Source of the DNA: Macrostomum lignano
Lineage: Eukaryota
Assembly: GCA_002269645.1 (NCBI GenBank)
Contig: NIVC01000284.1
Span: 372,001 to 436,000 of the forward strand
DNA: 64,000 bases
Direction of reading: 5' to 3'
Shown here: piece by piece, positions 10,752 to 64,000 of the stretch
How positions within the stretch are numbered: the stretch's first letter is position 1
How the letters are laid out: every line of letters begins with the position of its first letter
Notes under the pieces: generated by a model
The model's input: the letters and a program-made list of their open reading frames with translations, nothing else
What the model was told of the DNA's origin: nothing
Database searches by the model: none
Made by a program: the position numbers and the translations under genes

Positions 10752-11494
10752 CACAAGGCGGTAGTTCGATGCAAGTTCGCACAAAGTTTTGTACCTGTGT
10801 TGTGAGGAGATAAAGTGACAAGGATTTATATGTACATGCCGATGGTGCGATATCGGTAAAATAATGTCCTGAAATGAGCAGTTTCAAAGGTACCTGGTTC
10901 TTCAAAAGCAAACGCTCACTCAACTTCTCAAGACACGTATAATAGGCTTAATTCGCCTCAAGAAACTTAAAGTTATAAACAAATATAATGCTTGCTAGTT
11001 ATTCAGAGGCAAAAAATTTCTTGCAAAATTCCTCAAAATTCAATACACGAGCGTACTATTTTTCGAAGAATGAGACATTTCTTTCTGGGAAGTCTTCAAA
11101 TTTAAAGATTTATTTTAAAAGTTTTTAAATTAATCTTTCCTTAAAAATGCTCAGCGCATTCACAAACGCTTCAATTAGCATTTTGATAAAAAGAAAACGA
11201 ATTCTGTTTTACTCTTTTGGTTGAAAACTAAATAATATAGAAAAAAATTCGATTCCATAGGTTTTTCAATTAAAACAAAGTCCAAGTATTATATTTTTCC
11301 TTTTCTGCAAAATACGAGTATCAGTCGTGACGCAATTCAAAACGTAGTTTTGTTTTTACAAACAATTGGTGCTCATAAATACTTAAATAAGTTTTAAATT
11401 ATAATTACCTGCATGCACCCATGACAGACATCCTCTGAAACTCCTGTACACATGATGCTTCTTTCGTGTCCAATTTACAAGTGACTCATGGTCT

Positions 11495-14315: not shown

Positions 14316-15932
<1,617 letters not shown>

Positions 15933-16393
15933 ACAGAGACTTGGTGTATATGCTTAGTATAGCGATAAACAGATGTATATAGGAACTAAGGAGTGAAAAA
16001 TTTCAGATTCAGTCATTGCTACTCATAGTAGAGTAATTGACAACCCAAAACATAAAAAAACAGTCAGCCGATCAACAAGATTTACTGCGGCCGGAGTGAT
16101 TGTTTTGCACATTCATTACGTCATCTTTGTACATCATTTCAGTGACTATGCTTTTGTCAATAGATGCTGTGTACATTGCACGCCCACTGAATCGGATACA
16201 GCTGCACATCTTTGATGTACACCTCTAACCTTTTTGAAAAAAACCGTGCGATTTCTATCAGTAAGAACCCGCACATACAAAGTGGTCTCAAATATCAAAA
16301 GCATCGAGCAGAAGTAAGTTTTAAATCTCTCCTAATCAAACCCAGCAGAGACAAAGTGAATCGTCACGTGCTAGTGTAGTAAATTTTCTCTGA

Positions 16394-21607: not shown

Positions 21608-22828
21608 TATCATAATACATGTAAGCCAGTTAACTGGGGAAACGTCCTTTAGCAATGAGCAGTAGCTTTAGAGGCGTGTCTAGTATGTATTCTATACCGG
21701 TATATTACATTCTATATTACCAGCTAAAATAGGTTCTGAGATCTTACTCGTTGGCAAGCTGGTCTAAACCACCAAGCCTTGGTCCGAACCTCACCTGTGG
21801 ACACACGTTCAAATAAGTTCTGTATAACTATGAATATAGTGCTAGAATGGTCTATTTTACATAGCAGCCGAACTACGTCGCTCTGTAGCAACAGTAGTCG
21901 GCGGTTTTGAGTCCTTAGTTACTGTAGACTTTGTCTTTGCCTTCACTTGTAGAAACCCGTTTAATGTGAAGCCGCTCCTCAACGCTGGTCTCTTGATCTC
22001 TTGGAATTTTAGGAATCGAAAATTCTTAAAAGTTGGTAGCTATGAAAGTACCCTCGCATTTTTACGAGTATCTCTCTAACGTGGCAACTATATTTTTATT
22101 TGATTTATATTATTTGATTAACGGTTTGCAAACAAACTAATGTTGAGCGCAGTTTGAGTTGGTGCTCTAGGTTTATTGATTTTTCAATTTAATAGAAAGG
22201 GGTTTAAAGCACAGGCTCTAGCGGGGAGTGGGGTGGTAAGAGTGCATAACCTGATGTGAACGATTTAAAAAATCAGGGCGAAAGGTAGCGTGAATCGACA
22301 GGGTAGATGCAGATACAACTCAAAACCAAACTAAAAACTACAACAAAATTATTGAGTAGTCCAATAACGACAATGAGTGGCACGGTAGTCGATCGTGAGT
22401 ATAAGTTTGTACAGACATGCAAACGATATCAACAACACCTTTACTCTTCCAATTAACTTTATCCTTTCAATTACTGGCAAATACGACTAATCACCCGAAG
22501 AGCCTTCAAGCGCATTTTAGAAAAAAAATCCAGTTTCTTTTAGTACTTGACTGATATACTAAACGCATGTTGTAATTAAAGGCTTTATAGTCCTCGTAAT
22601 AAAATTTTTGCTACAACCAAGTGAAAAACTTTACGTTGATCTCTCCAAGTTATTCTTGGTTATAACATTTGGTTAACCTTAACTAACGCTTTAAAAGCAG
22701 ACCCAATCTGTAACTGAACTGGTATTAACTACAGAAAATTATTGGGATTACGAAATTTAAAGAGAAGTTAGTTTTAGAATTAAACAGAAACTTCAGTGCA
22801 CTACAAAAATCTTCTAAACGACATCAGT

Positions 22829-25800: not shown

Positions 25801-27248
25801 TGATCTTTTAAAGATGGAGGAAATTTCATCAGAAGTAAAGACTCCGCAACGTCGAGCTTGAGATTGTTGACGGCTGACTCCACTGATCGCAGATAGCCCT
25901 CATCTTTAATGCTGGAATCATTGATGCTGTTAACAAAGTCTTTCGTCTCTTCCAAGCTACCACTCCAAGCAGCAGATTCTGCAGCGGACGCGTAGCATTC
26001 GTCCTTTTGGCCCTGGTTCCTAATAGACGCAGCTAGAAACTTCACAACATCCCATTTTTGCGAATCCGAAGCGGATTTTGCAGCTTTCTTGCAGCACTGA
26101 TCTTTTACAGTTTCGTCGACCATTTCTTGAACCAGATAGGTCACCACCTCAAGATGACCGTTCTTTGCTGCAGGCGGAGTGGTCGTGTTGCAGCACTGGT
26201 CCTTCAAGTTGTCTGCAACAGAGTCTACCAGAAACTTTGTGATCCAAAGCTGACGATTCTCTCCGAATGCCTCAGCTACTTTAAGGCAGCACTTGTTTTT
26301 CAGTTTCTGGTCTTCGATGGCTTCGATAGCATGTTTTGCCACTTCAAAGTGACCGCAGCTGGATGCAACTTCAGCTACTTTTATTGGGCATTCATGCTTG
26401 AGTCTTATGTTTTTGCAGCCTTGCAACACGGACTTCACTAGCTCAAAGTGTCCATTTCTAGCAGCAGATTCGGCAGAAATCATGCACAGTGCACGTTTCT
26501 CGCTTTCATTTTCTAATTTATTGAGCAACGCTTCGACAAGTTGGGCGTAGCCTTTGGCACCGATATGCCTTGCTGCGACTGTCACTGAGAGTCGTTGATC
26601 TGCTTCGTGCTGTGCCAAGACATCACTGCACTGCTCTCTCACTTCTGGTTCAGTGGATTTTCTCGACAACAGTTCCAGTGTCTCCAACAATCCTTTTCCT
26701 GCAGCTTGTTTCTCTTGGTTGTTTGTTGCAGTTCCAGCTGCCTCTATGCGAAACTGTTGCTTCAACTCCTCGTCTGAGCTCAGTTCAACAAAAAAATTTC
26801 GGACATGTAAATCCTGGCTGTCTGCAGCAGCGTTAGCGAATCTGCGGCAGCATTGGTCTTTCAAGCTTTGGTTGCTGATGGCTTTTGTAAGAATTTGCAC
26901 GACATCCCAAGAGCGCCATATTTGGGCGGATTCTGCCATCTCACGGCACCAATTGTCCTTCCGCTCGCTGTCTCCCATGCTGTTTATGAATGATTCGAGT
27001 TTTTCCATCTGTTTGAACTTCATTGCGTGAATGGCAGCGGTTATGCAGCTCTGGTTCCTGGCATCTTCATCGCCAATACAGCTTATCAAGTACTCCACCA
27101 TTTCCCATTTCTGGTTTTGCAGAGCAAACAAAACTGAATCCTTGCATAACTGGTTTTTTGCATTCGAGTCATGCGTCTGCTCTACAAAAGCTTTTATTTT
27201 TTTTTGATCGCCACCCTTTACAACATCTATTAAACTGCTTTGACTCAT
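22829..27248 (-). CDS. Ankyrin-repeat cGAS-like receptor (Mab-21/cGLR nucleotidyltransferase), paralog A, 1374 aa, 3 exons
   Basis: Exons 27248-24832, 24752-24394 and 24177-22829 join in frame through GT-AG introns of 79 and 216 nt (phases 2 and 1), totalling 4125 nt. Exon 1 has degenerate 33-aa repeats and then canonical ankyrins (GATALMLAADAGHHELIEKLVELGA, GRTALTRACEAGH). Exon 2 has TGSYAEG...SDIDW (NTase GS plus DxD). Exon 3 has RLDLC (third acid), HLV, RVSFSLHEK, LKTYHAKTLLF and MPHFF, which are Mab-21 family motifs. Confidence 0.88.
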
Positions 27249-32896: not shown

Positions 32897-35749
32897 ATGA
32901 GCAGCGATGAAGATGACGATACAAGATTGCTAGAATCATTCACGCAGCAACTAGAACGCATTGAAGACAGCAGTTTGAAAAATGAATTCTGTTTTGCGGC
33001 TATAAAATATCCGGCGATCCAAGGTCGCACAAAACTCGTTCAGTTAGTAGTAAACAAAATGGCTGGCCAGGATGCCCGGGATCAGTGCTGCTTACTGGCA
33101 GCAGAATTCGCTGCAGAAGCTTGTCAATGGGATGTGGTTGCAGTTCTAATAGACGAAGTAAATATACTAATTGCGTTGGCAATTAGAAATATGGTGATCT
33201 CAAAAATTTGGAACCAAAGTATGAAATATCAGTGCTGCAAGGAAGCTGCGGAATCTGCTGCAAGGATCGGGCAGTGGAAAATTGTAACCTTTCTCTTGGA
33301 CACAGTCGCTGGCCAAAGTTTGGGACCTCAGTGCTCAAAGGAAGCTAAATCTGCTGCATCGAGTGGTCATTTAGAAGTGGTGAAGTTTCTTGTGGGGACA
33401 GTCGCTGACCAAAGTGAGAGAGATCAGTGCTGCAAGGAAGCTGCGGAATCTGCTGCAATTTGTGATCATTTAGAAGTGGTGAAGTTTCTTGTGGAGACAG
33501 TCGCTGACCAAAGTGAGAGAGATCAGTGCTGCAAGGAAGCTGCAAAATATGCTGCATCGAGTGGTCATTTCGAAGTGGTGAAGTTTCTTGTGGAGACAGT
33601 CGCTGACCAAAGTGAGAGAGATCAGTGCTGCAAGGAAGCTGCGGAATCTGCTGCATCGAGTGATCATTTAGAAGTGGTGAAGTTTCTTGTGGAGACAGTC
33701 GCTGACCAAAGTGAGAGATCTCAGTGCTGCAAGGAAGCTGCGAAATCTGCTGCAAGGAATTGTCATTTAGAAGTGGTGAAGTTTCTTGTGGAGACAGTCG
33801 CTGACCAAAGTGAGAGAGATCAGTGCTGCAAGGAAGCTGCGAAATCTGCTGCATCGAGTGATCATTTAGAAGTGGTGAAGTTTCTTGTGGAGACAGTCGC
33901 TGACCAAAGTGAGAGAGATCAGTGCTGCAAGGAAGCTGCGGGATCTGCTGCATCGAGTGATCATTTAGAAGTGGTGAAGTTTCTTGTGGAGACAGTCGCT
34001 GACCAAAGTGAGAGATCTCAGTGCTGCAAGGAAGCTGCGAAATCTGCTGCAAGGAATTGTCATTTAGAAGTGGTGAAGTTTCTTGTGGAGACAGTCGCTG
34101 ACCAAAGTGAGAGAGATCAGTGCTGCAAGGAAGCTGCGGAATCTGCTGCAATTTGTGATCATTTAGAAGTGGTGAAGTTTCTTGTGGAGACAGTCGCTGA
34201 CCAAAGTGAGAGAGATCAGTGCTGCAAGGAAGCTGCAAAATATGCTGCATCGAGTGGTCATTTCGAAGTGGTGAAGTTTCTTGTGGAGACAGTCGCTGAC
34301 CAAAGTGAGAGAGATCAGTGCTGCAAGGAAGCTGCGGAATCTGCTGCATCGAGTGATCATTTAGAAGTGGTGAAGTTTCTTGTGGAGACAGTCGCTGACC
34401 AAAGTGAGAGAGATCAGTGCTGCAAGGAAGCTGCGGGATCTGCTGCATCGAGTGATCATTTAGAAGTGGTGAAGTTTCTTGTGGAGACAGTCGCTGACCA
34501 AAGTGAGAGATCTCAGTGCTGCAAGGAAGCTGCGAAATCTGCTGCAAGGAATTGTCATTTAGAAGTGGTGAAGTTTCTTGTGGAGACAGTCGCTGACCAA
34601 AGTGAGAGAGATCAGTGCTGCAAGGAAGCTGCGGAATCTGCTGCAATTTGTGATCATTTAGAAGTGGTGAAGTTTCTTGTGGAGACAGTCGCTGACCAAA
34701 GTGAGAGAGATCAGTGCTGCAAGGAAGCTGCAAAATATGCTGCATCGAGTGGTCATTTCGAAGTGGTGAAGTTTCTTGTGGAGACAGTCGCTGACCAAAG
34801 TGAGAGAGATCAGTGCTGCAAGGAAGCTGCGGAATCTGCTGCATCGAGTGATCATTTAGAAGTGGTGAAGTTTCTTGTGGAGACAGTCGCTGACCAAAGT
34901 GAGAGATCTCAGTGCTGCAAGGAAGCTGCGAAATCTGCTGCAAGGAATTGTCATTTAGAAGTGGTGAAGTTTCTTGTGGAGACAGTCGCTGACCAAAGTG
35001 AGAGAGATCAGTGCTGCAAGGAAGCTGCGGAATCTGCTGCATCGAGTGATCATTTAGAAGTGGTGAAGTTTCTTGTGGAGACAGTCGCTGACCAAAGTGA
35101 GAGATCTCAGTGCTGCAAGGAAGCTGCGAAATCTGCTGCAAGGAATTGTCATTTAGAAGTGGTGAAGTTTCTTGTGGAGACAGTCGCTGACCAAAGTGAG
35201 AGAGATCAGTGCTGCAAGGAAGCTGCGGAATCTGCTGCAATTTGTGATCATTTAGAAGTGGTGAAGTTTCTTGTGGAGACAGTCGCTGACCAAAGTGAGA
35301 GAGATCAGTGCTGCAAGGAAGCTGCAAAATATGCTGCATCGAGTGGTCATTTCGAAGTGGTGAAGTTTCTTGTGGAGACAGTCGCTGACCAAAGTGAGAG
35401 AGATCAGTGCTGCAAGGAAGCTGCGGAATCTGCTGCATCGAGTGATCATTTAGAAGTGGTGAAGTTTCTTGTGGAGACAGTCGCTGACCAAAGTGAGAGA
35501 TCTCAGTGCTGCAAGGAAGCTGCGAAATCTGCTGCAAGGAATTGTCATTTAGAAGTGGTGAAGTTTCTTGTGGAGACAGTCGCTGACCAAAGTGAGAGAG
35601 ATCAGTGCTGCAAGGAAGCTGCGAAATATGCTGCACAAAAAGGTCATTTAGAAGTGGTGAAGTTTCTTGTGGAGACAATCGCTGACCAAAGTGTGAGTAA
35701 ACAGTGCTACAGAGACGCGGAAGTCTTGCAGTGCCTACTGAAGACATAA
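32897..35749 (+). CDS. Ankyrin-like repeat protein, 950 aa, with 22 near-identical 33-aa (99-bp) repeats plus a terminal repeat
   Basis: Single ORF with a unique N-cap and C-cap. The unit DQCCKEAAxxAAxxxHLEVVKFLVETVADQSER matches the ankyrin core AAxxGHLEVVKxL. The array runs exactly 33422-35599 (22 x 99 nt). It is homologous to the repeat region of gene A. Confidence 0.82.
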   Translation: MSSDEDDDTRLLESFTQQLERIEDSSLKNEFCFAAIKYPAIQGRTKLVQLVVNKMAGQDARDQCCLLAAEFAAEACQWDVVAVLIDEVNILIALAIRNMVISKIWNQSMKYQCCKEAAESAARIGQWKIVTFLLDTVAGQSLGPQCSKEAKSAASSGHLEVVKFLVGTVADQSERDQCCKEAAESAAICDHLEVVKFLVETVADQSERDQCCKEAAKYAASSGHFEVVKFLVETVADQSERDQCCKEAAESAASSDHLEVVKFLVETVADQSERSQCCKEAAKSAARNCHLEVVKFLVETVADQSERDQCCKEAAKSAASSDHLEVVKFLVETVADQSERDQCCKEAAGSAASSDHLEVVKFLVETVADQSERSQCCKEAAKSAARNCHLEVVKFLVETVADQSERDQCCKEAAESAAICDHLEVVKFLVETVADQSERDQCCKEAAKYAASSGHFEVVKFLVETVADQSERDQCCKEAAESAASSDHLEVVKFLVETVADQSERDQCCKEAAGSAASSDHLEVVKFLVETVADQSERSQCCKEAAKSAARNCHLEVVKFLVETVADQSERDQCCKEAAESAAICDHLEVVKFLVETVADQSERDQCCKEAAKYAASSGHFEVVKFLVETVADQSERDQCCKEAAESAASSDHLEVVKFLVETVADQSERSQCCKEAAKSAARNCHLEVVKFLVETVADQSERDQCCKEAAESAASSDHLEVVKFLVETVADQSERSQCCKEAAKSAARNCHLEVVKFLVETVADQSERDQCCKEAAESAAICDHLEVVKFLVETVADQSERDQCCKEAAKYAASSGHFEVVKFLVETVADQSERDQCCKEAAESAASSDHLEVVKFLVETVADQSERSQCCKEAAKSAARNCHLEVVKFLVETVADQSERDQCCKEAAKYAAQKGHLEVVKFLVETIADQSVSKQCYRDAEVLQCLLKT

Positions 35750-36835: not shown

Positions 36836-36884
36836 AAAGCAGAGAGGTAAGAAGCCACATGTAGTTTATTCAAAAAATGTACCT

Positions 36885-37415
<531 letters not shown>

Positions 37416-37880
37416 TATTCATCTATTCGAGCGTATAAGCTTTAATATTAAAGATCGAATAAGTTTTTCCATGAAAGCAAAAGTAGTGGGTAGTATCCTT
37501 ATACAGTGCATAAAAATTTGCGTCCAGTTGAAAACGCCTGGCAGAGCTGCAAGTACATGTAGTGATATGATGGTACTGCAATGCAAAATCTTAGCTGTTG
37601 TAGTGGTAATTTTCATTAGTGCAGAAAAAAGCATCAATTTCAGTCCGCTCCTGACTGAAAGAGAACGGTGTCCTTTCAGTCCATTGACTGAGACAGTCTT
37701 GTCCAATTAGGTTACCAAAAGTGACTTGTTGTTGATGCTGCGATCATGATCTACACCATGAGCACAGGTGCAAGCTTTGTCGACTTCCTGCTGGCTGATG
37801 CAATTGGGTGCAATGCATTTTGTTTTTCATTTTCTTGTGTCTGTCACTGCATAAGCTAATAAATATGAATTTCATAAAGG

Positions 37881-38545: not shown

Positions 38546-39694
38546 GCGATTCACACTCACTAGTGCCAGCCCCAAAGCACAGAGAGTGTGACATGTCTGA
38601 AGATTAGAAAGTCAGGGCTGCTATCAGCGTTCAAATGCTGTTATGCCACCCCTGACTGACTGTGTAGGTCACGCGATAAAAGTGCGGCACAGCCACTGCC
38701 ACTCCCCGCAGCTCGTGATAAAACGGAGGAGTACAATGGAGGAGAGAGCTAAGACCTCTCATTCTTTCTTCCTGGAAAGCACAATACACTCGCGCATCGG
38801 TCCGAGGGAGATCACCGACCCTTACACTTGACCCGAGCTCGACAGTAGGCATGTGGCTGTAGCCCAATGCATTAACAGTAGGAATACCAAGCCATTTTTC
38901 GCCCGTCGAACTACCAAGAGGATGTCACCTGGTGTCATCTGTTGAAGGTGCCGACGGTGTCGGGGGATGACAGAATGCTTGAGATATTAGCTTAGGATGT
39001 CCAGCAGTTGAGACTTGCCCACTGTCGAGGCTTGATCAGCAAAACTACAGAAATTTCCATCAGGGTGTCCATAGTCACCTGGTGCCACCTGTTGAAGGTC
39101 CAGAAGCTCCGTCTGGGTGAAAACCAGTGACCAACGAAGACAGACCTGATGCAGTAACATGTGATAGAAGTGCTGATGAAATTTGGTGACTTAGCAAGGC
39201 TGCACTGAGGTGCAGTGCTGATTGGCTCACAGGGGTGTACTGGTTACACTAGCGCTTATGGGAAAATCCGACCTTCTGGCAGAATCGTCGAATATCTCGA
39301 CGGTCCGGAGGGCTGGAAAATTTATTCTTGTTTGAGAAGGTGCGCAACAAAAAGTTAGCATGTGTTTTTTAATTTTGTGTACCTGCATTGCTCCAATACG
39401 GCCCAGCAAAAATTGTCGGGGGGGGGAGGAATTCCCCCCTTTTAGTAGTTCCACTGTTAAAATAGGTATTTTAACCTATACCTATATCGAAGAGACAGGA
39501 AGCAGTGGATAAAATAACAAAAATATCCGCGCTATAGCCGCTGTACACCCTGTATGAGCAAGTGCATGAGTGCTGTGCCTGCGTACAGTATTGACGCTTG
39601 TTGTGGGATGATGTGGGACGATATAGAAAGAAATTGATGTTTCTCTTTAGTTTTAAGTCGAACTGTCCAATCTTCCTACTACATGTATAAGCAG

Positions 39695-42600
39695 TGTCTC
39701 TAGAACCTGTAACTGATCTGGTCAACAGAATCAAAGACGAACGACGCAAAGATCTGTGCTGCAAGAATGCTGTAAAGGCTGCGTCAGATAACCAAAAATG
39801 GTCTGTAGTTAAATTTCTGGCAGAATCTGTCAGCTCAGATGACGGTAAAGATGACTGCTACGAAACCGCTGCAGAACGAGCCGCATGGAGCGGAGAGGCA
39901 GAAGAAACGAAATTCTTTGTGTCAAAAATCGCTGATCCGCACCGGAAGGGTCAGAGCTATCTTAAGTCAATTGAGTCAGCGGCCAGTAAGCTGAAATTTA
40001 ATGTCGTCGAATCATTAAGTTCAGATGAAGTCAGTTACTCAGGTCCTGCGAAATGAAGGCTGTGAAAGAGCGATGAAGCACGCGTCCAAAGACAAGTACC
40101 TTGATTTTGTTGAATTTCTCATTACAACCGTGTCTGACGATCGAGTTCGAGACAAGTGCTGCTTGACTGCCGTGGAGCACGCTGCATTCAACGGTCACTC
40201 CAGAGTGGTGGACTACTTAAGGCGATCAATAAGTCCGTCTGCCGAGCAAGAATTCCTCCTGAAAGCGGTGATAGGTTCAGGAAGCGGCGGCCACCCTGAA
40301 GTGTTTCATATCGTATCCAGAGATTTTAATTACGACTTAGCAAAAATGGCCGCGGAATCAGCAGCCCAGTCCGGAAAAAAGGATAGCATGCTACATTTTT
40401 TGGACCAAATTAAAAATAAAAATGGCGACGTTGAAGAATGCAACCACATATGTGCAAGGGCAGGAGCTTCCTTTCATCACGAACACATCGTAAACTACTT
40501 CGATATTCAGCCCCAATGGCTTAAGGAAGACAAAGACTTCGTGGATTTCTTTTCGAAGTTGGCGAGGGAAGGAAAGAATTCAATTCTTAAAAAACTTTTG
40601 CCTCGTATGAGTAAAGCTGAAACTCATCATCTTTTAACGGAATCAATTTCAAAAGGCTACGTCGCACTTGCCTTAGCGCTAGTGCCTTTTGTCTGCAAAC
40701 AGCAAGTCGATCTGTCTGACAAAGATGGATCCACTGCTCTCATGCTGGCAGCTGATGCAGGTCACCACGAACTCATCGAGAAACTGATAAAGCACGATGC
40801 TTCAGTAAATGCTCAAGATAGTCTCGGTCGAACCGCTTTGACTCGAGCGTGCAACGCAGGTCACGTGCGTGTGGCCAAGTCTTTAATAGACTCTGGGGCG
40901 AATGCAAGCCATCGAGACAATCAGGGTCTGACTTGCGCGCAGCTTGCAGAGAATCGAGGACACACCGAGGTGCTGCGATTGCTGGAATCGACCAGCCTCA
41001 GGTAATTTCAATATTACATTTAAATAGAAGTTTATTTATTAGAGAACAAACTGCATTAATGACTCTAAGCTACTGTTAATTTCCAAAATAATTGTCGATT
41101 GAGTCAAAATATTCTTTTCAGAAGCAACGACTGCAACAAAAAAAGCCTAAAACTACACGATTTGCTGAAAAAGTCCGGATTCACGAGTTCCAGAGCTCAG
41201 AGCGTGCAGGCAATGGCCGACTGCCTTCAAAGAGTTGCAATTTCTATTGTTCAAGGCGAAATAGAAATTACGGGTAGCTTCGCAGAGGGATGGGCTAATA
41301 GCCTAATGCAAGTAAATGGCAGAACAGCAGCTGAGTCAGACATCGACTGGACTGTGTTCATTGCTGGACTGATAATGCATTTGAATAACCACTGCCATTG
41401 TCCACCCGGCACCAAGTTACGTGTGACAAACGGACACGCCCAAGTGAATGAAGGGTCCGGTAAGTTAAGAATATTTAGTGTAAAACCGTACATGACACGC
41501 TAGTTAGTCAGACTAAAGTAATATAAAATGTTGGCCCCTCCGAGAGAAAAGAGTGGTTTGTGTGGTAGGTTCGTTGAAATAAAGCATAATTATGAGGAGG
41601 CCATTTTATTCAAATAATATAGATATTACAGGTGCTTCTTTGAAACTGATCCCAGAAAAAATCCTGACAAATTTTAAATACGAGCTAAAAATCCTTTGAC
41701 CGCTAAAAAGTTACCGTAAAGAGAATATCACTTCCGACGTTTTTAAGCCCGCATTCCTACTCATGCAGTCCAGAATTTTTTACTCAACTATTATCCACCA
41801 TATAGGAAGCCAGCCAGCAGTCACGACACCAGCAGGCGGTGTTCGACCAACACAGGACCTGTGCTATGCCATAAAGTGCTGCAGTAGCTATTGTACAGAA
41901 AACAGAAAATTGCTCAAAAAATTGGTTATACGCCCCAACGCTGACGATCCAGGACTACATGTTCATCTCGTCAGTGCTACCCGACCTACAAGGCAAACTC
42001 GAAACGAGCTCAGGGTGAGCTTCAGCTTACACGAAAAGAGGATCATGAGAAGCCTCTCTGATGTCCAGGGTCAACTCTTCACAGTAATCAAGTTTATCTT
42101 CAAAAGATACTTACCCATCACACTGAAAACACCTGGACTCAAGACTTACCACACAAAGACTCTGCTCTTCTTCATGCTCGAGAAGCACGGAACCGAGGAT
42201 TTTAATCTGGCTTGGCAACCGGAAAATCTGATTTCTCTTGTGAAAGAAGCTCTTGAAATGATGCTGAGCTTCATCGACTCGAGCAGCTCGCCCGATGAGT
42301 GCATGCCGCACTTCTTCATGTCAGACGCTCCGCTCTACTTCAAGAACGCTGGAATCGGCGGCGACTTCGACAACACGAAGTCGAGGGTTCGACTCCGACT
42401 GAGTGAGTTGAGATTCGGCATCGAAGGAGTAATTGAGCAATTCATGGAACAGCTGAGACCACTGCAGTCACAGAACTTCTTTTTCCATCCGTTCACCATT
42501 CTACCACTCACGCATCCAGCTAGAGTGAAAGAAGTCACGTCAAAGTACACTGATCAGTACCTACACCTTGCGGATGCTTACTGCGTAGTGCATCACTGCT

Positions 42601-43424
42601 TGCAGCAGCTCCAGTCAGATCACACTAATCAAGATGACCTCGCGACTCAACTCAGTCTGTTGGACCAGCTGAATTGGTTTAAATGTGCCTTTTTGTGTCT
42701 CACTGCCATGGCTCACCTCAAGTTTGGTGAGGCTAAGAAGGCTGAGGTAACACTAACTGGACTTCAGAGTCACTCCATACAGACTGCTTGGGACCCAGAG
42801 CTGTTATCAAATCGAAGATTCAAGAACCGGAGTACGTGGGAAGTACCTCTCGAATTAGACTGGGCGTGGAGGTTCTGCTTTCCGTGCGACTCTCCGCCTC
42901 GTTTTCCTTTTCTTCCCGAGTTCACGCAGTCTCTGCTCACTGCCAGACTGTCGCAGCCTCGGTGCTCACACCTGTACGCGAACTTCCGCTGCCTGAGCTG
43001 GAGTCTCCAAGCTGAGCTGCTCCGCGATCGAACACCCGAAAATGAGATCTCATTCGATGCTTGGAAGACTCAGCTGCAAGAGGACCCGGACTTGGAGGAG
43101 CTGCTCACCCTGGCTCACTACAGCAACAGTCGCGAGCATGTGGAGTTCTGCTTGAGACAGATGGAGATTGTAAAAGACGAGGGGCGCGTTGCCATGGAGA
43201 GGGTTGATAAAGATAAGCTTCAATTGGTCAAGAAAATATGGATGAGTGAGCTTTCCGACTTTGGTGCCGTGATAGAAGCCACTGATTTGCTACTCATTCA
43301 GTCAGGAATTGTGTCACGGGTCAAGAAAATTGGCAGTATTCTCAGAATACTAGCATTGCACTTCTTGATAGTTGTCGTGTTGATTGTTATTGTCATTTTC
43401 GTATCCTATCTTCCCGCTGTTTGA
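39695..43424 (+). CDS. Ankyrin-repeat cGAS-like receptor (Mab-21/cGLR), paralog B, with C-terminal transmembrane helix; 5'-incomplete with one frameshift
   Basis: Segments are about 39695-41001 (frameshift near 40015-40020), 41122-41459 and 41806-43424. The GT-AG introns have the same positions and phases as in gene A. Motifs are TGSFAEG...SDIDW, QDLC, RVSFSLHEK, LKTYHTKTLLF and MPHFF. The protein ends ILALHFLIVVVLIVIVIFVSYLPAV*. Confidence 0.8.
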
Positions 43425-48652: not shown

Positions 48653-51600
48653 AGGAGGAGTACTAGTCTGTTGGAGATGTTTGAGGGGGAGTACATGTAT
48701 TCGACTGTTGGGCGATTGTTAGGCAAACAAGTGTTGCGGCTCAGGTAATCTATTTTGACTCAATTAATGAGATAACAACACATGTAAATGATGCTGACTT
48801 CCGCTAATGGAAAATATTTATTAGAAATATTTGATTCTTTGACTTAAAGGCAAATAAATATGGGGATCTAAGGCTGCAGGGAACCAGAATATGCCCAAGC
48901 TAATGACGATAGGCACTAGGCGTTTTTGTATTTGACGAGAAAAGCTTTAATAGCCGAATGAAAAGGGGCTTTTTTAGCTGCTTAATTTTTTTTGACTCGG
49001 GTCATTCCATAAAAGAGAAACAGTAACGTAAATTGCTCTCGCAAACAAATGGAAGCCTCATGGTGGCATTTTTGCGCTTCTGGAGAAGCTTAAAAGGCTA
49101 GTAATTAACCATGTATACTACTGAACTTATTTAAAGTAGTTACAAGCTATTAAACTCATAGAAATGTAAACTTGAAATTACAACTCATTTCATATTGGTT
49201 TTCGAATCTATTCTGGAAAAAATATGATAACTAAGTATCGTTTGTAGATAGACTAAAAAGCGGCATCACATTTTTACTACACTTCCTACTAAACTATTTT
49301 TTTCTGAGAAATTTTCTACTTTGAAAATTTCACGTTTTTGGACGCCATACGCCATACAGGCTACAGCTACAATATTGCTAGTTTACTTTTCAAACAAAAC
49401 TCAGTCTCAAATAAAGTACATCGTTTTAAGCATTTGCTATATGTCAATTTTCTACCATAGAACTTTATTGTCGATAATCGGTGCTTTTTAATTTGAAAAG
49501 AAAACTTTACTGCACACTTTTGTAAACATGGAGGTAAAAGTTATTATATCGGTAAAGATCACAAGAAAATTTCTACACACGAATCCAAGCACCGTTTAAC
49601 AATGTGCGAAGATGATCTGACTTCTGCAGGAAAATATACTTCTGTCGTAACAGATCCTCACGCAGAACACGGCCAATAAAACTCTAAAAGTTTAATTTCG
49701 GGTTTTTTTCTCTCTCTATCTCTCTCGCGACATTCTGCATCCATCTCATTTCTTTCTTTTGACTTAGCCGAATACGTAATTTTTAATTCCTTAACTTGTT
49801 TCATAGTGTAGTATGACTATTATTTTAGCCATAATAACTTTGTTGATTGAGTATAGCTATTGTCCCAGGGCTCTTAATTATTCTTTTGCTAGCCGTACTA
49901 GCTGCCACCACAGTTGTTACAGGGGGGATTCCTGTGCACCTAGAATACGACTAAATGCCACCAAAGTTGTAATAAAGCTATTTCTCCTTAACAAATCTAC
50001 TGGTTATTAATTGTCTTTCTACTGGTAGCGCATGTACTTCTATTGGTAGCGTATGTACTTCTATTGTACTTTCTGGCCTGAGCGGTCTAATAGCACTGTC
50101 TATTCTATTCCTATACTTCCCCTAAAAATATTATTCTCTCAGTCCTGGGCGTTCCCTGGATCAGAGGGTCACAGCTTATGCTCTTTCTCTGCCCTGAGGC
50201 GATCTTTCCCTCGCTCTGAGGCGGTTCTCCTGCCCTGAGGCGAATTTACTATTACTGCCCTGAGGCGATTTCTCGCTTTTTAGCGGATCTCAATACTACT
50301 CCCGATTTGGGGGTTTTACTATAGAAATGAATAAGACACTCTGAACAATTTTCTGATCAAGTTTTAGCTACTGTTAGAACACACGAAAAGCACAAGTTGA
50401 TTTCTTGGCCCACTCGGGGCTTCTATTTATACTAGAGTCTCTCATCAAGTCAAACAAATAATTGTGAAAAATATTTTTGTAAATCACAACATTTAAACAA
50501 AAACACTAGTAATTTCTTTTTAGCGCGGATTTGAACTAAAGTTTCTAAGAAAACAAGTTACTATTAGCACTATCGTACAGTATCATACTATTATTAATGC
50601 ACTGTCTCACTATGGCTTTAAATGAAGAGCAGATCGCGTCATCAATTAAAAAAATTGACATAATTGACAGACTGACTATAAAATGTATGCTATATATATA
50701 TGTATATCTATATATATATCTAGGCTTGTCTCCTACTCCCAGAGTCCCAGGCCTATAAGTATCAAAGTATGAATAGGCCTAGGCCTATGACTTTGTTCTA
50801 TGCTTTAATAGAAACAGAATGCATGTCTAGACCTAGTGATGTTGTCCATTAATAATTCATTAATCCATTAATAATTCAGAAATTCAGTTACATACATAGA
50901 ATATAGATCAGTATTTTTTGTTGTCTTTTGCATTTCATTATATTATATTTATATATACCTACCTAGTTCTAGCCCCTAGGCTAGGGCTAGGCTAGTTTTA
51001 GTGACCTAGCTAGTAAGTAAATCTTAATTAAATAGGTCTACTCTGTTTTTGTTTGTTTTATATATGCTTATCTAGATTTATAAATAGGTAGACTGACATA
51101 TCTGTAAAACTTGGTTTTAATCCCTCCTTGATTTTAAACACTTAGGTTAAGAGTGTAATGTCTACTTCTAGTGAATAGTGTTATAACTAGGCTTATCATT
51201 TTAATTTTAAAATAAAATAGGCCCTACTTTACTAAAAATTGTAATTGCTATATAGGGTATAGTTTTTATGAATTAGAATTAAACCTGGATGCTTAAATAT
51301 AGGCTTATGGTTGTTAGAAAGTTATCTTAAGCCTTGAACTACTATTTGAAGAATATAGATAGGCATAGTAAAATCTAAAAGTATTTATGCTAGATAGGCC
51401 TAGATGAATGATATGAAAAATATAGAATAGAAGAAAAACATAGGTCTAAATTTAATTAGACCATAGAACTTTTACAAAAGTTATTACTCTGACTGTTTAA
51501 AAACATAACAACGATATTTGTGTTATATTTTAGTTATTTTGAATTAAATATTAATGTTTATAATCCTAGAACTTTATTACAATTTTCCCTTTCATTCATG

Positions 51601-52518
51601 CTACTTTACATGGTCAATATGGCATCGCTACTTATTGGTTCCAAGCTTGTCTTTATACCAAGTGGCAAAGTGGCAAGCATCCTATGATTGCTAAAAGAAA
51701 AAATGAAGCCAGCCTAAAGTAAAAATGCAACATGATAAAGAGCCCTAAAGTAGGCCCTATTACTAAAAGCTCTTATAGACCTACTTTTATTGATAAGAAA
51801 GTAAGCTTAAGCTTTCTAGCAATATTGACTTTAAAATCTCAGTACTGGACTTTTTCAGTTTCAATTATTAGCAAACCAATTTAATTGTACATTGTAGTAA
51901 AAGATGCACCTAGTTGTTTTCAGATGTTTCTGCTTCTATTTTTTGCTAAAAGTATTGTTCACCCTAATTTCATTTTTCCATTGTACCATTAGTATTTTTC
52001 TATTGAATGTGTGCTTAACTTTTGTTTTAAAGTTGACTTATTTTTTGCTTGTGCTATTTCCCTTGTGCATACAAGTTTTATTTCATGAGCATATATGTGT
52101 ATTTGTTTACATTTTCACAAATAAATATGTCTACTTTATTTTGATTGTTCAATGACATTTGATTTTGTTCTGGCAGCTTACTAGCACAATACTAAAAGTG
52201 CAGAATCAAATAAGAAAGTCCTGTCATAACTCGTGTTCTTTATTGGAATTAGATTAGTGCATCGGGGTTTTATAAATGGATTACTAAACAGATCTGGGAA
52301 GATTTGATAAGACGGACAATGCATTCAATTGGTAAAGCTTAATACATCTTACAAGATCTGCCCAGATCTCCTAAGATCTGCTCGTGCAGACCGTGCAAGA
52401 TCTTCCTGCAGATCTTGTAAGTTCTGCCTATATATTTAAATAGTGCAGATCTGTTACGTTCTTGCAAGAACGTAGCGAGAAGCTCCAGACAGATCTGCTA
52501 AGAAATGGCATGACGATT

Positions 52519-52860
52519 TCATCTACAGTAGCCGGGCCTACATGGCCATGGAAATCCACCAAAGACACGGTTTTCCCGTCCCGCGGATGCAGCACGCCGT
52601 TTGGTGGTTGAGCTCGGCATAAGAGGTTCCTCGATTGAGTCGTCGACAGCTCTGCTCGACGGATCCACAACGTCGTCATCCTCTGGAAGTGGAAATCAGG
52701 GATCAGAAGTCTTTGTAAGAGAGCACTCTAAGGCCTATCAGATCGGCATAACGCGCGTGATTTCAAACCTACCGATCTCAGATTCGGCTTGTACAATGGC
52801 AGTTGAACAGAAGAGCAGCGCAAGAAGCGCAAGCTGCATCAGCGAGCTTCGGTTTGACAT
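52519..52860 (-). CDS. Secreted prepropeptide precursor, 83 aa (signal peptide, acidic pro-region, basic cleavage sites, short Cys-loop peptide); 2 coding exons
   Basis: Exons 52860-52773 and 52682-52519 join through a 90-nt GT-AG intron, giving MSNRSSLMQLALLALLFCSTAIVQA|ESEIEDDDVVDPSSRAVDDSIEEPLMPSSTTKRR|AASAGRENR|VFGGFPWPCRPGYCR*. A 94-nt GT-AG intron (52997-52904) lies in the 5' UTR. Splice sites are conserved with the 10-kb paralog. There is a TATA box upstream and AATAAA on the minus strand at 52239-52244. Confidence 0.78.
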
Positions 52861-53152
52861 CACAAGGCGGTAGTTCGATGCAAGTTTGCACACAGTTTTG
52901 TACCTGTGAGGTGAGGCGATAAAGTGACACGAATTTACATGCCAATGGTGCGATATCGGTAAAGAATAATGTCACTGAAAAGCGATTTCAATGCTACCTG
53001 GTTATTCAAAAGCAAACGCTCAAGTCCTCAAGACACGTAATATGTTTAATTCTCTTCAAAAGAATTAAAGTTTTAAACAAATAAAATGCGAGCTAGCTAT
53101 TTAAAAGTCTGACGTGAGAAAGCTAAACGCTGCAGGGGCAAAAGCAGGCGCC

Positions 53153-53159
53153 TTTTATA
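53153..53159 (-). promoter_or_regulatory. Candidate TATA box of the peptide gene
   Basis: The minus strand reads GCTATAAAAGGCG, about 155 nt upstream of the UTR-exon splice donor at 52998. Confidence 0.5.
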
Positions 53160-53741
53160 GCTGAATTTTGGGCTAGTAAGCAAAAAATGCTTTGCTTTTA
53201 GCTTTTGCGATCCCTTAGCCCTTTTTGAGTGTGTTAGCGCAGCGTCTTTCTCCAAAAAAATTTGAAATAGCTACCTGCTCAAAATTTAATATCAGTGTAC
53301 CATTTTTCAAATAATGAGAAATTTCTCGGACTACTTTTTACTTCTTACTTTTTGTTTGGGCAAGTTTTCAAATTTATATGATTTTACCTTATTATTCCAT
53401 TTAGAAAAAGATATTCTCAGTGAATTAAAAAAAACCCTTGAAACATTTCGAATTTCGAAAACGAATTCCGATCTCTGACTCTTTTGGTTGAACCGTAAAT
53501 ATTATAGAAAAAAATATTGAATTCATAAGTTTTTTTTAACTTGAAACGAATTGCACAGGTTTGATTTTTATTTTCTGCAAAATATCAGTCGAAATTAAAA
53601 ATGTAATTTTGCCTTTACGATCCACGGTGCTCATAAATACTTGAACTGCATTTTAGATAAACTTCTTTCACCGTCGACAGACACCCTCTGAAACACCTGT
53701 ACACATTAAAGAAGCAATTGAGGCACCTTCCGTGTCCAGAT

Positions 53742-54450
53742 GCACAAGTGACGCATGGTTGGTGATCGGTGAGGTGCACAAGTGACTCATGGTTGGTGAT
53801 CGGTGAGGTGCACAAGTGACTCATGGCTGGTGATCGGTGAGGTGCACAAGTGACTCATGGTTGGTGATCGGTGAGGTGCACAAGTGACTCATGGTTGGTG
53901 ATCGGTGAGGTGCACAAGTGACTCATGGCTGGTGATCAGTGAGGTGCACAAGTGACTCATGGTTTGTGATCAGTGAGGGGCACAAGTGACTCATGGTTGC
54001 ATGGTGATCGGTGAGGTGCACAAGTGACTCATGGTTGGTGATCGGTGAGGTGCACAAGTGACGCATGGTTGGTGATCGGTGAGGTGCACAAGTGACGCAT
54101 GGTTGGTGATCGGTGAGGTGCACAAGTGACTCATGGTTGGTGATCGGTGAGAGGCACAAGTGACGCATGGTTGGTGATCGGTGAGAGGCACAAGTGACTC
54201 ATGGTTGGTGATCGGTGAGGTGCACAAGTGACGCATGGTTAGTGATCGGTGAGGTGCACAAGTGACTCATGGTTGGTGATCGGTGAGAGGCACAAGTGAC
54301 GCATGGTTGGTGATCGGTGAGAGGCACAAGTGACTCATGGTTGGTGATCGGTGAGGTGCACAAGTGACGCATGGTTGGTGATCGGTGAGGTGCACAAGTG
54401 ACGCATGGTTAGTGATCGGTGAGGTGCACAAGTGACTCATGGTTGGTGAT
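53742..54450. repeat. 34-bp TGACTCA-containing satellite, about 21 units (same family as 11495-13520)
   Basis: Direct reading. Confidence 0.95.
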
Positions 54451-57222: not shown

Positions 57223-57735
57223 TCATTGATTGCTGTACATTTCCCTTTCGAGTCCGTACAGGTTGTTGTCTAGGACGACACGTTCGACCGTGTAAACCTT
57301 GGTACACCACGATGTATTCAGTTCGCCGCCTTTCCGATCGTAACGGAAAAAGTTCCGCAGCAGCACCTTGTCACCGACTTTAAAGCTGAGGCTGCTGGTA
57401 GACGCGTACTTCTGAACGTACGAGCGCGATCTTGCAGATTTTGTCCTGTCGTCCCTGTGAAATCGCCCTGCAGCTTCGATGGGTTGGACTTTATCCCCTG
57501 ATGAGCTCCTCCAGTAGCAGAGGTGCGATCTTCTTTGATCAATCGACAAATCTTTTTGATCTTTCGCCTCCAGGCGACGCTCCGTACGTTGACCGATGGA
57601 GCTTCTTCTAACATCATAGAACAGCTGCTGGCCCTCGTACCTCAAGTTGCGCTCCTTTTGTCGAACCTTGCTTTTGAAGTTGTTCTTCTCCTTTGTTGTT
57701 GTCGAAGACGCAAAGATGTCGTTCGTATGCACCAC
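57223..57735 (-). mobile_element. Internally deleted Gypsy-type integrase remnant (GIN/Ginger-like)
   Basis: N-terminal TGGAHQGIKS (Zn-binding start, in the alternative frame) and C-terminal FKVGDKVLLRNF...RKGGEL..SW...YTV (GPY/F-like module). No DDE core is seen between them. Confidence 0.5.
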
Positions 57736-59984: not shown

Positions 59985-62900
59985 GTGCTCATTTTGGCGC
60001 CGCAGGCATTTATTTTGGCGCCACAGGAACTCATTTTAGCGCCGCAGGCACTCATTTTTACGCCGCAGGCACTCATTTTAACGCCGCAGGAACTCATTTT
60101 AGTGCCGCAGGCACTCATTTTAACGCCGCAGGCACTCAGTTTAGCGCCGCAGGCACTCATTTTAGCGCCGCAGGCACTCATTTTAGCGCCGCAGGCACTC
60201 GTTTTAGCGCCGCAGGCACTCATTTTGGCGCCGCAGGCACTCATTTTAGCGCCGCAGGCACTCATTTTAACGCCGCAGGCACTCAGTTTAGCGCCGCAGG
60301 CACTCATTTTAGCGCCGCAGGAACTCATTTTAGCGCCGCAGGCACTCATTTTACCGCCGCAGGCACTCATTTTGGCGCCGCAGGCACTCATTTTGGCGCC
60401 GCAGGCACTCATTTTGGCACCACAGGAACTCATTTTGGCGCCGCAGGCACTCATTTTGACGCCGCAGGCACTCATTTTAGCACCGCAGGCACTCATTTTA
60501 GCGCCGCAGGCACTCATTTTAGCGCCGCAGGCACTCATTTTAGCGCCGCAGGCACTTATTTTAGCGCCGCAGGCACTCATTTTGACGCCGCAGGCACTCA
60601 TTTTGGCACCGCAGGCACTCATTTTGGCACCGCAGGCACTCATTTTGACGCCGCAGGCACTCATTTTAGCGCCGCAGGCACTCATTTTAGCGCCGCAGGC
60701 ACTCATTTTGGCGCCGCAGGAACTCATTTTAGCGCCGCAGGCACTTATTTTAGCGCCGCAGGCACTCATTTTGACGCCGCAGGCACTCATTTTGGCACCG
60801 CAGGCACTCATTTTGACGCCGCAGGCACTCATTTTAGCGCAAATGGCACTCAGTTTAGCGCCGCAGGCACTCATTTTAGCGCCGCAGGCACTCATTTTGG
60901 CGCCGCAGGCACTCATTTTAGCGCCGCAGGCACTTATTTTAGCGCCGCAGGCACTCATTTTAGCGCCGCAGACACTCATTTTAGCACCGCAGACACTCAT
61001 TTTAGCGCCGCAGGCACTCATTTTGGCGCCGCAGGAACTCATTTTAGCACCGCAGGCACTCATTTTAGCGCCGCAGGCACTCATTTTGACGCCGCAGGCA
61101 CTCATTTTAGCGCAAATGGCACTCAGTTTAGCGCCGCAGGAACTCATTTTGGCGCCGCAGGCACTCATTTTAGCGCAAATGGCACTCAGTTTAGCGCCGC
61201 AGGAACTCATTTTGGCGCCGCAGGCACTCATTTTAGCGCCGCAGGCACTCATTTTGGCGCCGCAGGCACTCATTTTAGCGCCGCAGGCACTTATTTTAGC
61301 GCCGCAGGCACTCATTTTAGCGCCGCAGACACTCATTTTAGCACCGCAGACACTCATTTTAGCGCCGCAGGCACTCATTTTGGCGCCGCAGGAACTCATT
61401 TTAGCACCGCAGGAACTCATTGTAGCGCCGCACCGTTTTGGCGCCGCAGGCATTTTTTTGGCGCCACAGGAACTCATTTTGGCGCCGCAGGAACTCATTT
61501 TAGCGCAAATGGCACTCAGTTTAGCGGCACAGGCACTCATTTTAGCGCCGCAGGCACTCATTTTAGCGCCGCAGGCACTCATTTTAGCACCGCAGGCACT
61601 CATTTTGGCGCCGCAGGCACTCATTTTGACGCCGCAGGCACTCATTTTAGCGGCACAGGCACTCATTTTAGCGCCGCAGGCACTCATTTTAGCGTCGCAG
61701 GCACTCATTTTAGCGCCGCAGGCACTCATTTTAGCGCCGCAGGCACTCATTTTGGCGCCGCAGGCACTCATTTTGGCACCACAGGAACTCATTTTGGCGC
61801 CGCAGGCACTCATTTTGACGCCGCAGGCACTCATTTTAGCACCGCAGGCACTCATTTTAGCGCCGCAGGCACTCATTTTAGCGCCGCAGGCACTCATTTT
61901 GGCGCCGCAGGCACTCATTTTAGCGCAAATGCACTCATTTTAGCGCCGCAGGCACTCATTTTAGCACCGCAGACACTCATTTTAGCGCCGCAGGCACTCA
62001 TTTTAGCACCGCAGGCACTCATTTTAGCGCCGCAGGCACTCGTTTTGGCGCCGCAGGCATTTTTTTGGCGCCACAGGCACTCATTTTGGCGCCGCAGGCA
62101 CTCATTTTAGCGCCGCAGGCACTCATTTTAGCGCCGCAGGCACTCATTTTGGCGCCGCAGGAACTCATTTTAGCGGAAATGGCACTCATTTTATCGCTGC
62201 AGGCACTCAGTTTAGCGCCGCAGGCACTCATTTTGGCGCCGCAGACACTCATTTTGGCGCCGCAGACACTCATTTTGGCACCACAGGAACTTATTTTAGC
62301 ACCGCAGGCACTCATTTTAGCGCCGCAGGCACTTATTTTAGCGCCGCAGGCACTCATTTTGGCGCCGCAGGCATTTATTTTGGCGCCACAGGAACTCATT
62401 TTGGCGCCGCAGACACTCATTTTGGCGCCGCAGGCACTCATTTTAGCGCCGCAGGCACTTATTTTAGCGCCGCAGGCACTCATTTTGACGCCGCAGGCAC
62501 TCATTTTGGCACCGCAGGCACTCATTTTGACGCCGCAGGCACTCATTTTAGCGCAAATGGCACTCAGTTTAGCGCCGCAGGAACTCATTTTGGCGCCGCA
62601 GGCACTCATTTTAGCGCCGCAGGCACTCATTTTGGCGCCGCAGGCACTCATTTTGGCGCCGCAGGCACTCATTTTAACGCCGCAGGCACTCATTTTAGCG
62701 CCGCAGGCACTCATTTTAGCGCCGCAGGCACTTATTTTAGCGCCGCAGGCACTCATTTTAGCGCCGCAGACACTCATTTTAGCACCGCAGACACTCATTT
62801 TAGCGCCGCAGGCACTCATTTTGGCGCCGCAGGAACTCATTTTAGCACCGCAGGCACTCATTTTAGCGCCGCAGGCACTCATTTTGACGCCGCAGGCACT

Positions 62901-64000
62901 CATTTTAGCGCAAATGGCACTCAGTTTAGCGCCGCAGGAACTCATTTTGGCGCCGCAGGCACTCATTTTAGCACCGCAGACACTCATTTTAGCGCCGCAG
63001 GCACTCATTTTGGCGCCGCAGGAACTCATTTTAGCACCGCAGGAACTCATTTTAGCGCCGCACCGTTTTGGCGCCGCAGGCATTTTTTTGGCGCCACAGG
63101 AACTCATTTTGGCGCCGCAGGAACTCATTTTAGCGCAAATGGCACTCAGTTTAGCGGCACAGGCACTCATTTTAGCGCCGCAGGCACTCATTTTAGCGCC
63201 GCAGGCACTCATTTTAGCACCGCAGGCACTCATTTTGGCGCCGCAGGCACTCATTTTGACGCCGCAGGCACTCATTTTGGCGCCGCAGGCACTCATTTTA
63301 GCGCAAATGCACTCATTTTAGCGCCGCAGGCACTCATTTTAGCACCGCAGACACTCATTTTAGCGCCGCAGGCACTCATTTTAGCACCGCAGGCACTCAT
63401 TTTAGCGCCGCAGGCACTCGTTTTGGCGCCGCAGGCATTTTTTTGGCGCCACAGGCACTCATTTTGGCGCCGCAGGCACTCATTTTAGCGCCGCAGGCAC
63501 TCATTTTGACGCCGCAGGCACTCATTTTAGCGGCACAGGCACTCATTTTAGCACCGCAGGCACTCATTTTAGCGCCGCAGGCACTCATTTTGGCGCCGCA
63601 GGCACTCATTTTGGCGCCGCAGGCACTCATTTTAACGCCGCAGGCACTCATTTTAGCGCCGCAGGCACTCATTTTGGCGCCGCAGGAACTCATTTTAGCG
63701 GAAATGGCACTCATTTTATCGCTGCAGGCACTCAGTTTAGCGCCGCAGGCACTCATTTTGGCGCCGCAGACACTCATTTTGGCACCACAGGAACTTATTT
63801 TAGCACCGCAGGCACTCATTTTAGCGCCGCAGGCACTTATTTTAGCGCCGCAGGCACTCATTTTGGCGCCGCAGGCATTTATTTTGGCGCCACAGGAACT
63901 CATTTTGGCGCCGCAGACACTCATTTTGGTGCCGATGGCACTTTTTTGAGCGGCGCGGGCACCATTTAGGCGCCGCAGACACTCATTTTAGCGCCGCAGA
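59985..64000. repeat. 21-bp satellite (TTTTAGCGCCGCAGGCACTCA)n, more than 4 kb, continuing off the window end
   Basis: Direct reading. It gives rise to the PQALILA and MSACGAK ORFs on both strands. Confidence 0.97.

Follow-up and report, generated by a model that had tools for sequence, protein, structure and literature searches.

What does a small spliced gene encode when it shares its signal peptide with a neuropeptide precursor but ends in a quite different peptide of 15 residues? The question is raised by locus A, which lies on the minus strand at positions 52519-53159 of a 64,000-nucleotide (nt) stretch of the genome of the flatworm Macrostomum lignano (assembly GCA_002269645.1, contig NIVC01000284.1, positions 372,001 to 436,000), hereafter the window. 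Our analysis gives an even chance that locus A is an intact, lineage-specific gene for a neuropeptide-type prepropeptide, a duplicate of the (Q/P)SGVFRWamide precursor gene BOX15_Mlig026077. The exon/intron structure of locus A is homologous to that of BOX15_Mlig026077 through the 5′ untranslated region (5′-UTR), the signal exon, the intron phase and the spacer, and very rapid divergence is limited to the peptide-coding tail.

Locus A is a two-exon coding gene. An exon of 88 nt (52860-52773, with its ATG at 52860) is joined to an exon of 164 nt (52682-52519), and the spliced coding sequence (CDS) of 252 nt yields a product of 83 amino acids, MSNRSSLMQLALLALLFCSTAIVQAESEIEDDDVVDPSSRAVDDSIEEPLMPSSTTKRRAASAGRENRVFGGFPWPCRPGYCR. 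The original prediction, made from the letters of the window alone, had described a gene split by a 90-nt intron and absent from the list of open reading frames (ORFs). The intron is indeed present with GT-AG borders, and the locus is missing from the list because its longest unspliced ORFs span only 51 and 49 amino acids. Only a prokaryote-style list of this kind misses it; public annotation does include it. Three related loci serve for comparison: paralogue B, a second copy in the window, and L001 (NIVC01004577.1) and L002 (NIVC01001908.1; both at 10001-10560 of the extracted loci), the two genomic loci of BOX15_Mlig026077 in GCA_002269645.1. The elements of locus A, from promoter to stop codon, are as follows.

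53152 to 53159, minus strand: TATA-like box TATAAAAG; L001 and L002 carry CTTAAAAGG at the homologous position, and the box is deleted in paralogue B.
52998 to 53125, minus strand: putative 5′-UTR exon 1, with 76% identity to the paralogues; its 3′ end is the conserved donor CCAG/GTA.
52904 to 52997, minus strand: 5′-UTR intron of 94 nt, GT to AG; donor and acceptor are kept in B, L001 and L002.
52861 to 52903, minus strand: 5′-UTR exon 2, with 91-95% identity among the paralogues.
52773 to 52860, minus strand: coding exon 1, comprising signal peptide codons 1-25, then ESEI and the first base of codon 30.
52786 to 52860, minus strand: predicted signal peptide MSNRSSLMQLALLALLFCSTAIVQA, codons 1-25.
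52683 to 52772, minus strand: coding intron of 90 nt, phase 1, GTAGGT...CCAG.
52603 to 52682, minus strand: exon 2 acidic spacer, EDDDVVDPSSRAVDDSIEEPLMPSSTT.
52594 to 52602, minus strand: basic processing site K57-R58-R59; strong homology to the paralogues extends to here.
52567 to 52593, minus strand: AASAG-RENR linker, matching in position the first TTFRW-GKR unit of the VFRWamide paralogue.
52522 to 52566, minus strand: C-terminal 15-mer VFGGFPWPCRPGYCR, with C77 and C82 in a C-x4-C arrangement.
52519 to 52521, minus strand: stop codon TGA.

The product has the n/h/c layout of a signal peptide, with LMQLALLALLF as the h-region and V-Q-A at positions -3 to -1, as judged by a heuristic check. 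The whole acidic spacer (residues 26-56) carries a net charge of -10, and the 15-mer a charge of +2, or +1 without its terminal Arg. KRR59 and RENR68 precede the 15-mer and the stop codon directly follows it, so that the peptide is flanked by sites of the prohormone-convertase type. The signal ending in VQA, the acidic pro-piece, KRR, RENR and the 15-mer had all been called by the original prediction and are each found in place. Upstream, the predicted start of 5′-UTR exon 1 is some 30 nt 3′ of the TATA box, and the acceptor of the 5′-UTR intron could alternatively be used for spliced-leader (SL) trans-splicing. The TATA box (53159-53152) and the UTR intron (52997-52904) thus stand as originally called. 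The polyadenylation signal that completed the earlier gene model does not: neither AATAAA nor ATTAAA occurs within the first 273 nt 3′ of the stop codon, and the first AATAAA (52244-52239), which falls outside the range given for the gene, sits inside an AT-rich insertion of about 2.8 kilobases (kb). An antisense ORF of 90 amino acids (52601-52873, plus strand) was considered as the true gene and rejected; it is open in A and B and interrupted in all frames of L001. The minus-strand gene is the real one, since the antisense ORF is broken in L001 and conservation tracks the minus-strand exons.

The relatives of locus A are few. UniProt A0A1I8J6K9 (M. lignano, "uncharacterized protein", 83 amino acids) is identical at 82 of 83 residues (99%, E 4.8e-47); the sole difference is N67K, which gives REKR in place of RENR, and the entire 15-mer is the same. 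This entry presumably represents another genomic copy or allele of the hidden-polyploid M. lignano genome. As A0A1I8J6K9 is the same protein, the spliced model of locus A already stands in public annotation, and the claim of a new family, if taken to mean an unannotated gene, is not supported. A search of 5.8 billion proteins with the locus A product returned two matches, A0A1I8J6K9 and BOX15_Mlig026077 (g1/g2, PAA47094.1 and PAA62704.1; UniProt A0A267ENZ8; E 9.6e-17). Exhaustive phmmer against 1.84 billion cluster representatives recovered only the same two relatives, with E 1.3e-17 for BOX15_Mlig026077, and a further search that started from the full-length paralogue again gave no others. 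By its sequence, locus A is therefore placed in a small A0A1I8J6K9/BOX15_Mlig026077 family that appears confined to M. lignano, as far as the searched databases show. Pfam has no match for the 83-residue product or for the 149-residue paralogue, a PDB sequence search with the 83-residue product gave only noise (E about 1), and Rfam has no match in the 49-56 kb interval. One further UniProt entry, A0A1I8HF14 (1150 amino acids, 'Peptidase A2 domain-containing protein'), is a chimeric model running from 57223-57735 (minus strand) through 52567. It joins the ORF at 57223-57735 to an in-frame 5′-UTR exon 2, the peptide CDS up to GREKRV and retro-element-like sequence, skipping the 15-mer, and is treated here as a prediction artefact.

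The paralogue BOX15_Mlig026077 gives the family its most recognizable member. Locus A and L001/L002 have in common both 5′-UTR exons and their intron, the signal exon, a phase-1 intron in the same codon and the acidic spacer as far as the initial KR; the signal peptides of locus A and BOX15_Mlig026077 are identical at 24 of 25 residues, and all four splice sites are conserved in an alignment of A, B (about 10.4-11.0 kb), L001 and L002. After the spacer, the genomic CDS of L001/L002 (149 amino acids) continues as GTTFRWGKR, then seven copies of (Q/P)SGVFRWGKR and a short acidic tail. BOX15_Mlig026077 thus carries eight F-R-W-G-K-R units (one TTFRWGKR and seven (Q/P)SGVFRWGKR). The annotated protein has 129 amino acids against the 149 of the genomic CDS, which therefore has two extra repeats. 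Tandem short peptides that each end in Gly-Lys-Arg are a standard mark of amidated neuropeptide precursors. Judged by this architecture, BOX15_Mlig026077 looks like a multi-copy amidated neuropeptide precursor of the (Q/P)SGVFRWamide type, a genuine and undescribed neuropeptide gene of M. lignano. It is very probably expressed, since BOX15 gene models come from transcript-based annotation (PMC5730564). A full-text literature search with peptide strings of the locus A 15-mer, the family tails and GVFRW found no describing paper, though flatworm neuropeptide surveys may list the VFRWamide gene under an npp name.

How evenly has the gene been conserved? Nucleotide identity along the alignment, from 5′ to 3′, runs as follows.

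5′-UTR exon 1: 76% between A and B, 76% between A and L001.
UTR intron: 84% between A and B, 69% between A and L001.
5′-UTR exon 2: 95% between A and B, 91% between A and L001.
Signal exon: 95% between A and B, 95% between A and L001.
Coding intron: 84% between A and B, 74% between A and L001.
Spacer: 90% between A and B, 80% between A and L001.
Peptide tail: 33% between A and B, 55% between A and L001.

Exons are better conserved than introns: the signal exon is 95% identical, as against 74-84% for the introns. Ratios of non-synonymous to synonymous substitution (dN/dS, Nei-Gojobori), which rest on a tiny number of sites, come to roughly 0.17 in the signal peptide and 0.7-0.85 in the spacer. 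The gene therefore combines a constrained signal cassette with a peptide tail that changes faster than its introns.

The origin of the 15-mer can be approached by fixing the alignment register of the locus A tail against the repeat array through the flanking homology. AASAG-RE(N/K)R then falls opposite TTFRW-GKR, and VFGGFPWPCRPG opposite QSGVFRWGKRPS, with GGFPWPCRP of locus A aligned to GVFRWGKRP of the paralogue. In this register 18 of 33 nt match, a score reached by 35 of 100,000 shuffles, and 5 of 15 residues agree (G, F, W, R and P; p ~0.011). The 15-mer is therefore likely, but not proven, to be a remodelled repeat in which Pro has replaced the Arg of FRW, and Pro-Cys-Arg has replaced Gly-Lys-Arg. 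The change from GKR to PCR would have removed both amidation and cleavage, and translation therefore continues through PGYCR to the stop codon. With the amidation Gly and the dibasic site replaced, the 15-mer is not an FRWamide, nor is locus A an FRWamide precursor, as the FRW-Gly-basic unit is absent (a single GFPW-P-C-R is present). The K of REKR in A0A1I8J6K9 matches the K of GKR, which makes N67 of the window copy the derived state.

If locus A is an intact neuropeptide-type gene, a pathway from precursor to ligand can be proposed from its sequence features; secretion, processing, disulfide formation and a signalling role are all predicted steps. The product would enter the endoplasmic reticulum co-translationally, where the signal would be cut after VQA25, and the precursor would be sorted to the regulated secretory pathway. 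Prohormone-convertase or furin-type enzymes would then cut after KRR59 and RE(N/K)R68, and a carboxypeptidase would trim the basic residues, possibly including the terminal Arg83. C77 and C82 would be oxidised to close a six-residue ring, CRPGYC. This would release VFGGFPWPCRPGYC(R), of 14 or 15 residues, as an extracellular neuropeptide- or hormone-like ligand. The processing machinery exists in M. lignano, as a PC2 homologue is present that is neural and essential (PMC4490696).

Comparison with known peptide systems sharpens what such a ligand would and would not resemble. BOX15_Mlig026077 encodes eight F-R-W-G-K-R units that would give amidated heptapeptides, whereas locus A encodes a single 15-mer that lacks Gly-Lys-Arg, is not amidated and contains two Cys. 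In an echiuran and in annelids, the FRWamide/LFRWamide multi-copy precursors count as accepted neuropeptides, and the annelid ones are tied to sNPF-type genes (PMC7737342, PMC6389622). These precursors, of the sNPF-related/RYamide-gene kind, consist of a signal and several copies of x-F-R-W-Gly-basic, as does the parent gene BOX15_Mlig026077 (PMC7737342, PMC6389622). Database searches with locus A or the 149-residue paralogue yielded no match among the LFRWamide/LFRFamide (sNPF-type) precursors of annelids and molluscs. Six-residue Cys-x4-Cys rings freed at basic sites also occur in urotensin II/somatostatin and vasopressin/oxytocin, a likeness of topology only. Urotensin II/somatostatin rings have an F-W-K core (CFWKYC), which CRPGYC lacks. 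Vasopressin/oxytocin precursors combine an N-terminal ring and a PxG-amide with a Cys-rich neurophysin, whereas the locus A product has a C-terminal ring, only three Cys in 83 residues and neither of the latter two features. The earlier statement that the ring matches neither the oxytocin nor the urotensin type is borne out on these grounds.

Several results weigh against the reading of locus A as an intact neuropeptide-type gene. The statistical case for a remodelled repeat weakens once the register is freed: with all registers allowed, the match of the 15-mer to the repeat has p ~0.05, and free local alignment of the locus A tail with the repeat array is not significant (p ~0.47 for DNA, 0.04-0.12 for protein). 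Mismatched codons in the alignment of the 15-mer with the repeat differ at 2-3 bases each. Searches of protein databases with locus A or the 149-residue paralogue found no homologue outside M. lignano, and there are thus no homologues from other species by which to show constraint on the 15-mer. The window copy has lost the dibasic K67, and the locus A protein is absent from the NCBI transcript-based annotation, for which an ORF-length cut-off may be the sole cause. Finally, the closest duplicate of locus A is decaying, and locus A itself is interrupted in its 3′ UTR by the insertion of about 2.8 kb and in its upstream region by a satellite. The two features concerned are these.

10396 to 10751, minus strand: paralogue B, with exon 1 at 10751-10665, an intron at 10664-10563 and exon 2 from 10562.
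49700 to 52500, minus strand: AT-rich insertion of about 2.8 kb (GC about 32%), which splits the stop codon of locus A from the ancestral 3′-UTR motif.

Paralogue B is probably a pseudogene. Its signal exon has a 1-nt deletion at 10686/10685 (GCCATT-TACAAG), and the shifted frame, spliced at the conserved donor, enters exon 2 and terminates eight codons into it. It also lacks a segment of about 150 nt, the one that holds the TATA box in A. Restoring the frame gives the tail RRKR-QITWDRFWEGWGWSEIVK*, whose relation to the FRWGKR unit depends on indels. Splicing from another donor, 4 nt further 3′, could restore the frame of B, but this was judged unlikely, as the TATA segment is absent and the tail is scrambled by indels. 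The four splice sites are kept in this paralogue, as the original prediction had said; as support for the peptide it falls away, being a probable pseudogene with a different C-terminal peptide. Upstream of both copies lies a 34-nt satellite, ACAAGTGACTCATGGTTGGTGATCGGTGAGGTGC, at 53741-54450 for A (about 0.6 kb away) and 11477-13503 for B, that is, 0.5-0.6 kb from the genes; L001/L002 have little or none of it at the corresponding position. Because they share this satellite and are each other's closest relatives, A and B appear to be recent duplicates, one of which is dead. On the other side of locus A, the ancestral 3′-UTR motif TTAGAGTnTTATTGGCCG now sits at about 49690-49660. The gene-proximal end of the intervening insertion is rich in short inverted repeats containing CAGATCT, and no clear terminal inverted repeats of a known transposon type and no coding capacity were found in it.

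These observations define the main rival, in which locus A is itself a recent, decaying duplicate of the VFRWamide precursor: the repeat array would have collapsed and drifted, the ORF would be open by chance in a locus that may still be transcribed, and the peptide would have no selected function. We regard this as unlikely but worth taking seriously. It would account for the state of sister B, the closest copy by identity, with its frameshift, promoter-segment deletion and indel-scrambled tail; for the loss in A of the amidation Gly and dibasic sites of the repeats and the change of K67 to N in the window copy; for the insertion in the 3′ UTR and the satellite upstream; for the almost neutral evolution of the spacer; and for the missing NCBI protein. 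Decay would not lead one to expect A to have kept an intact ORF, TATA box and signal peptide together with its full set of four splice sites, nor would it predict purifying selection on the signal exon as compared with the introns. The second copy or allele, A0A1I8J6K9, moreover retains an identical 15-mer and a perfect REKR site, and two Cys placed around a Pro-Gly turn are unlikely from drift alone, although this last point is only suggestive.

The next alternative is a secreted peptide of defence or offence (antimicrobial, toxin or pheromone-like), in which a conserved signal/pro cassette carries a hypervariable mature peptide under diversifying selection. The identity of the A and B tails (33%, against 84% for the A-B introns) would fit such a scheme, as would the anionic propiece and a Pro/Gly/aromatic-rich, weakly cationic peptide with a predicted disulfide. 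Conotoxin and amphibian skin-peptide superfamilies show the same gradient as the locus A family, with conservation declining from signal to intron to mature region, a likeness of form only. Unlike those superfamilies, however, the M. lignano family is tiny, comprising one pseudogene variant and one canonical neuropeptide precursor among its members, and no evidence of a venom or gland context was found for it. Its best-preserved member is a textbook multi-copy amidated neuropeptide precursor rather than a toxin; only three gene lineages are known, far from a large arsenal; and the hypervariability stems at least partly from indels and repeat slippage, with one of the two 'variants' being a pseudogene. 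Cationic antimicrobial peptides have a strongly cationic, amphipathic mature peptide, whereas the 15-mer is short and not amphipathic, with a net charge of +2 (+1 when trimmed), and its propiece is common to the VFRWamide paralogue. The argument from the acidic pro-piece is weak for this very reason, as the spacer is shared and the charge is only +1 to +2. An antimicrobial or toxin function thus seems improbable. Among the functions first offered for the peptide, neuropeptide is the best fit, given a VFRWamide paralogue with the same signal exon and spacer, and the other two are unsupported.

Least credible, to the point of being very improbable, is the earlier proposal that the peptide serves as effector arm to the cGLR-like (ANK-Mab21) genes nearby, co-regulated with or downstream of them. 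The only link is proximity: about 9 kb separate A from the Mab21-like ORF 41763-43424, and about 12 kb separate B from the one at 22829-24142. The idea is left unsupported, because the 10 kb flanking L001 and L002 on each side contain neither Mab21 nor ANK sequence. The peptide genes are direct duplicates and the Mab21/ANK genes inverted ones, indicating independent duplications with no larger joining block, and the interval from A to the closest Mab21-like ORF contains retro-element and piggyBac-like fragments. The 83-residue product has no nucleotide-binding or known cGLR-effector domain, and animal genes are not generally arranged in functional clusters of this kind.

The neighbouring genes merit description in their own right. 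Pfam assigns only Mab-21_C to the ORFs 41763-43424 (plus strand) and 22829-24142 (minus strand), just above threshold (E 6e-6 and 1.4e-7), and a PDB sequence search with these ORFs gave no match, so the Mab21 assignment of the window ORFs is weak. The regions 39694-43424 (plus strand) and 22829-27248 (minus strand) are inverted copies, each with an ankyrin-repeat ORF directly followed by a Mab21-like ORF, and these pairs, which are very divergent, may be fused ANK-Mab21 (cGLR-like) genes. A GS...SDID motif in the ORF 41099-41503, which has no Pfam match, is a candidate nucleotidyltransferase core. At 33213-35708, an ORF of 950 amino acids (32897-35749, plus strand) contains 25 copies, 91% identical, of a 99-nt unit that encodes a single ankyrin repeat of 33 amino acids. 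This array is recently expanded, and its opposite strand is also open for 800 amino acids. The segment 46445-48367 (minus strand) holds retro-element pol fragments (a weak RVT_1, RT_RNaseH and an integrase zinc-binding domain), with a piggyBac-like DDE_Tnp_1_7 within or adjoining it. An ATG-initiated ORF of 409 amino acids at 16394-17623 (plus strand) has no Pfam match. Tandem repeats occupy 1-9000, 14292-15937, 19870-21608, 36883-37426 and 59988-63999, in arrays that reach 4 kb and have repeat periods of 4, 20-23, 31-34 and 21 nt; the many long spurious ORFs on both strands result from this very high tandem-repeat load.

What, then, would an intact neuropeptide-type gene at locus A mean for M. 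lignano? Should the peptide be produced, this flatworm, a model of regeneration and reproduction, would have a cyclic signalling peptide specific to its lineage, and a compact case of a multi-copy amidated neuropeptide gene yielding a structurally different ligand. In planarians, paralogous prohormone genes are known to have undergone lineage-specific expansion (PMC2953531). A bolder and rather doubtful version is that a flatworm neuropeptide gene spawned a daughter in which an FRW-Gly-Lys-Arg repeat turned into a new non-amidated, disulfide-cyclised ligand (VFGGFPWPC-RPGY-C), an early stage of the conotoxin-like 'cassette' mode of innovation. Were this true, the signal/spacer cassette would have been kept as its cargo changed faster than the introns, with the sister copy already dead. 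Locus A would not open a new class of immune effectors, and the unnamed (Q/P)SGVFRWamide precursor would be the more immediately useful by-product of this analysis.

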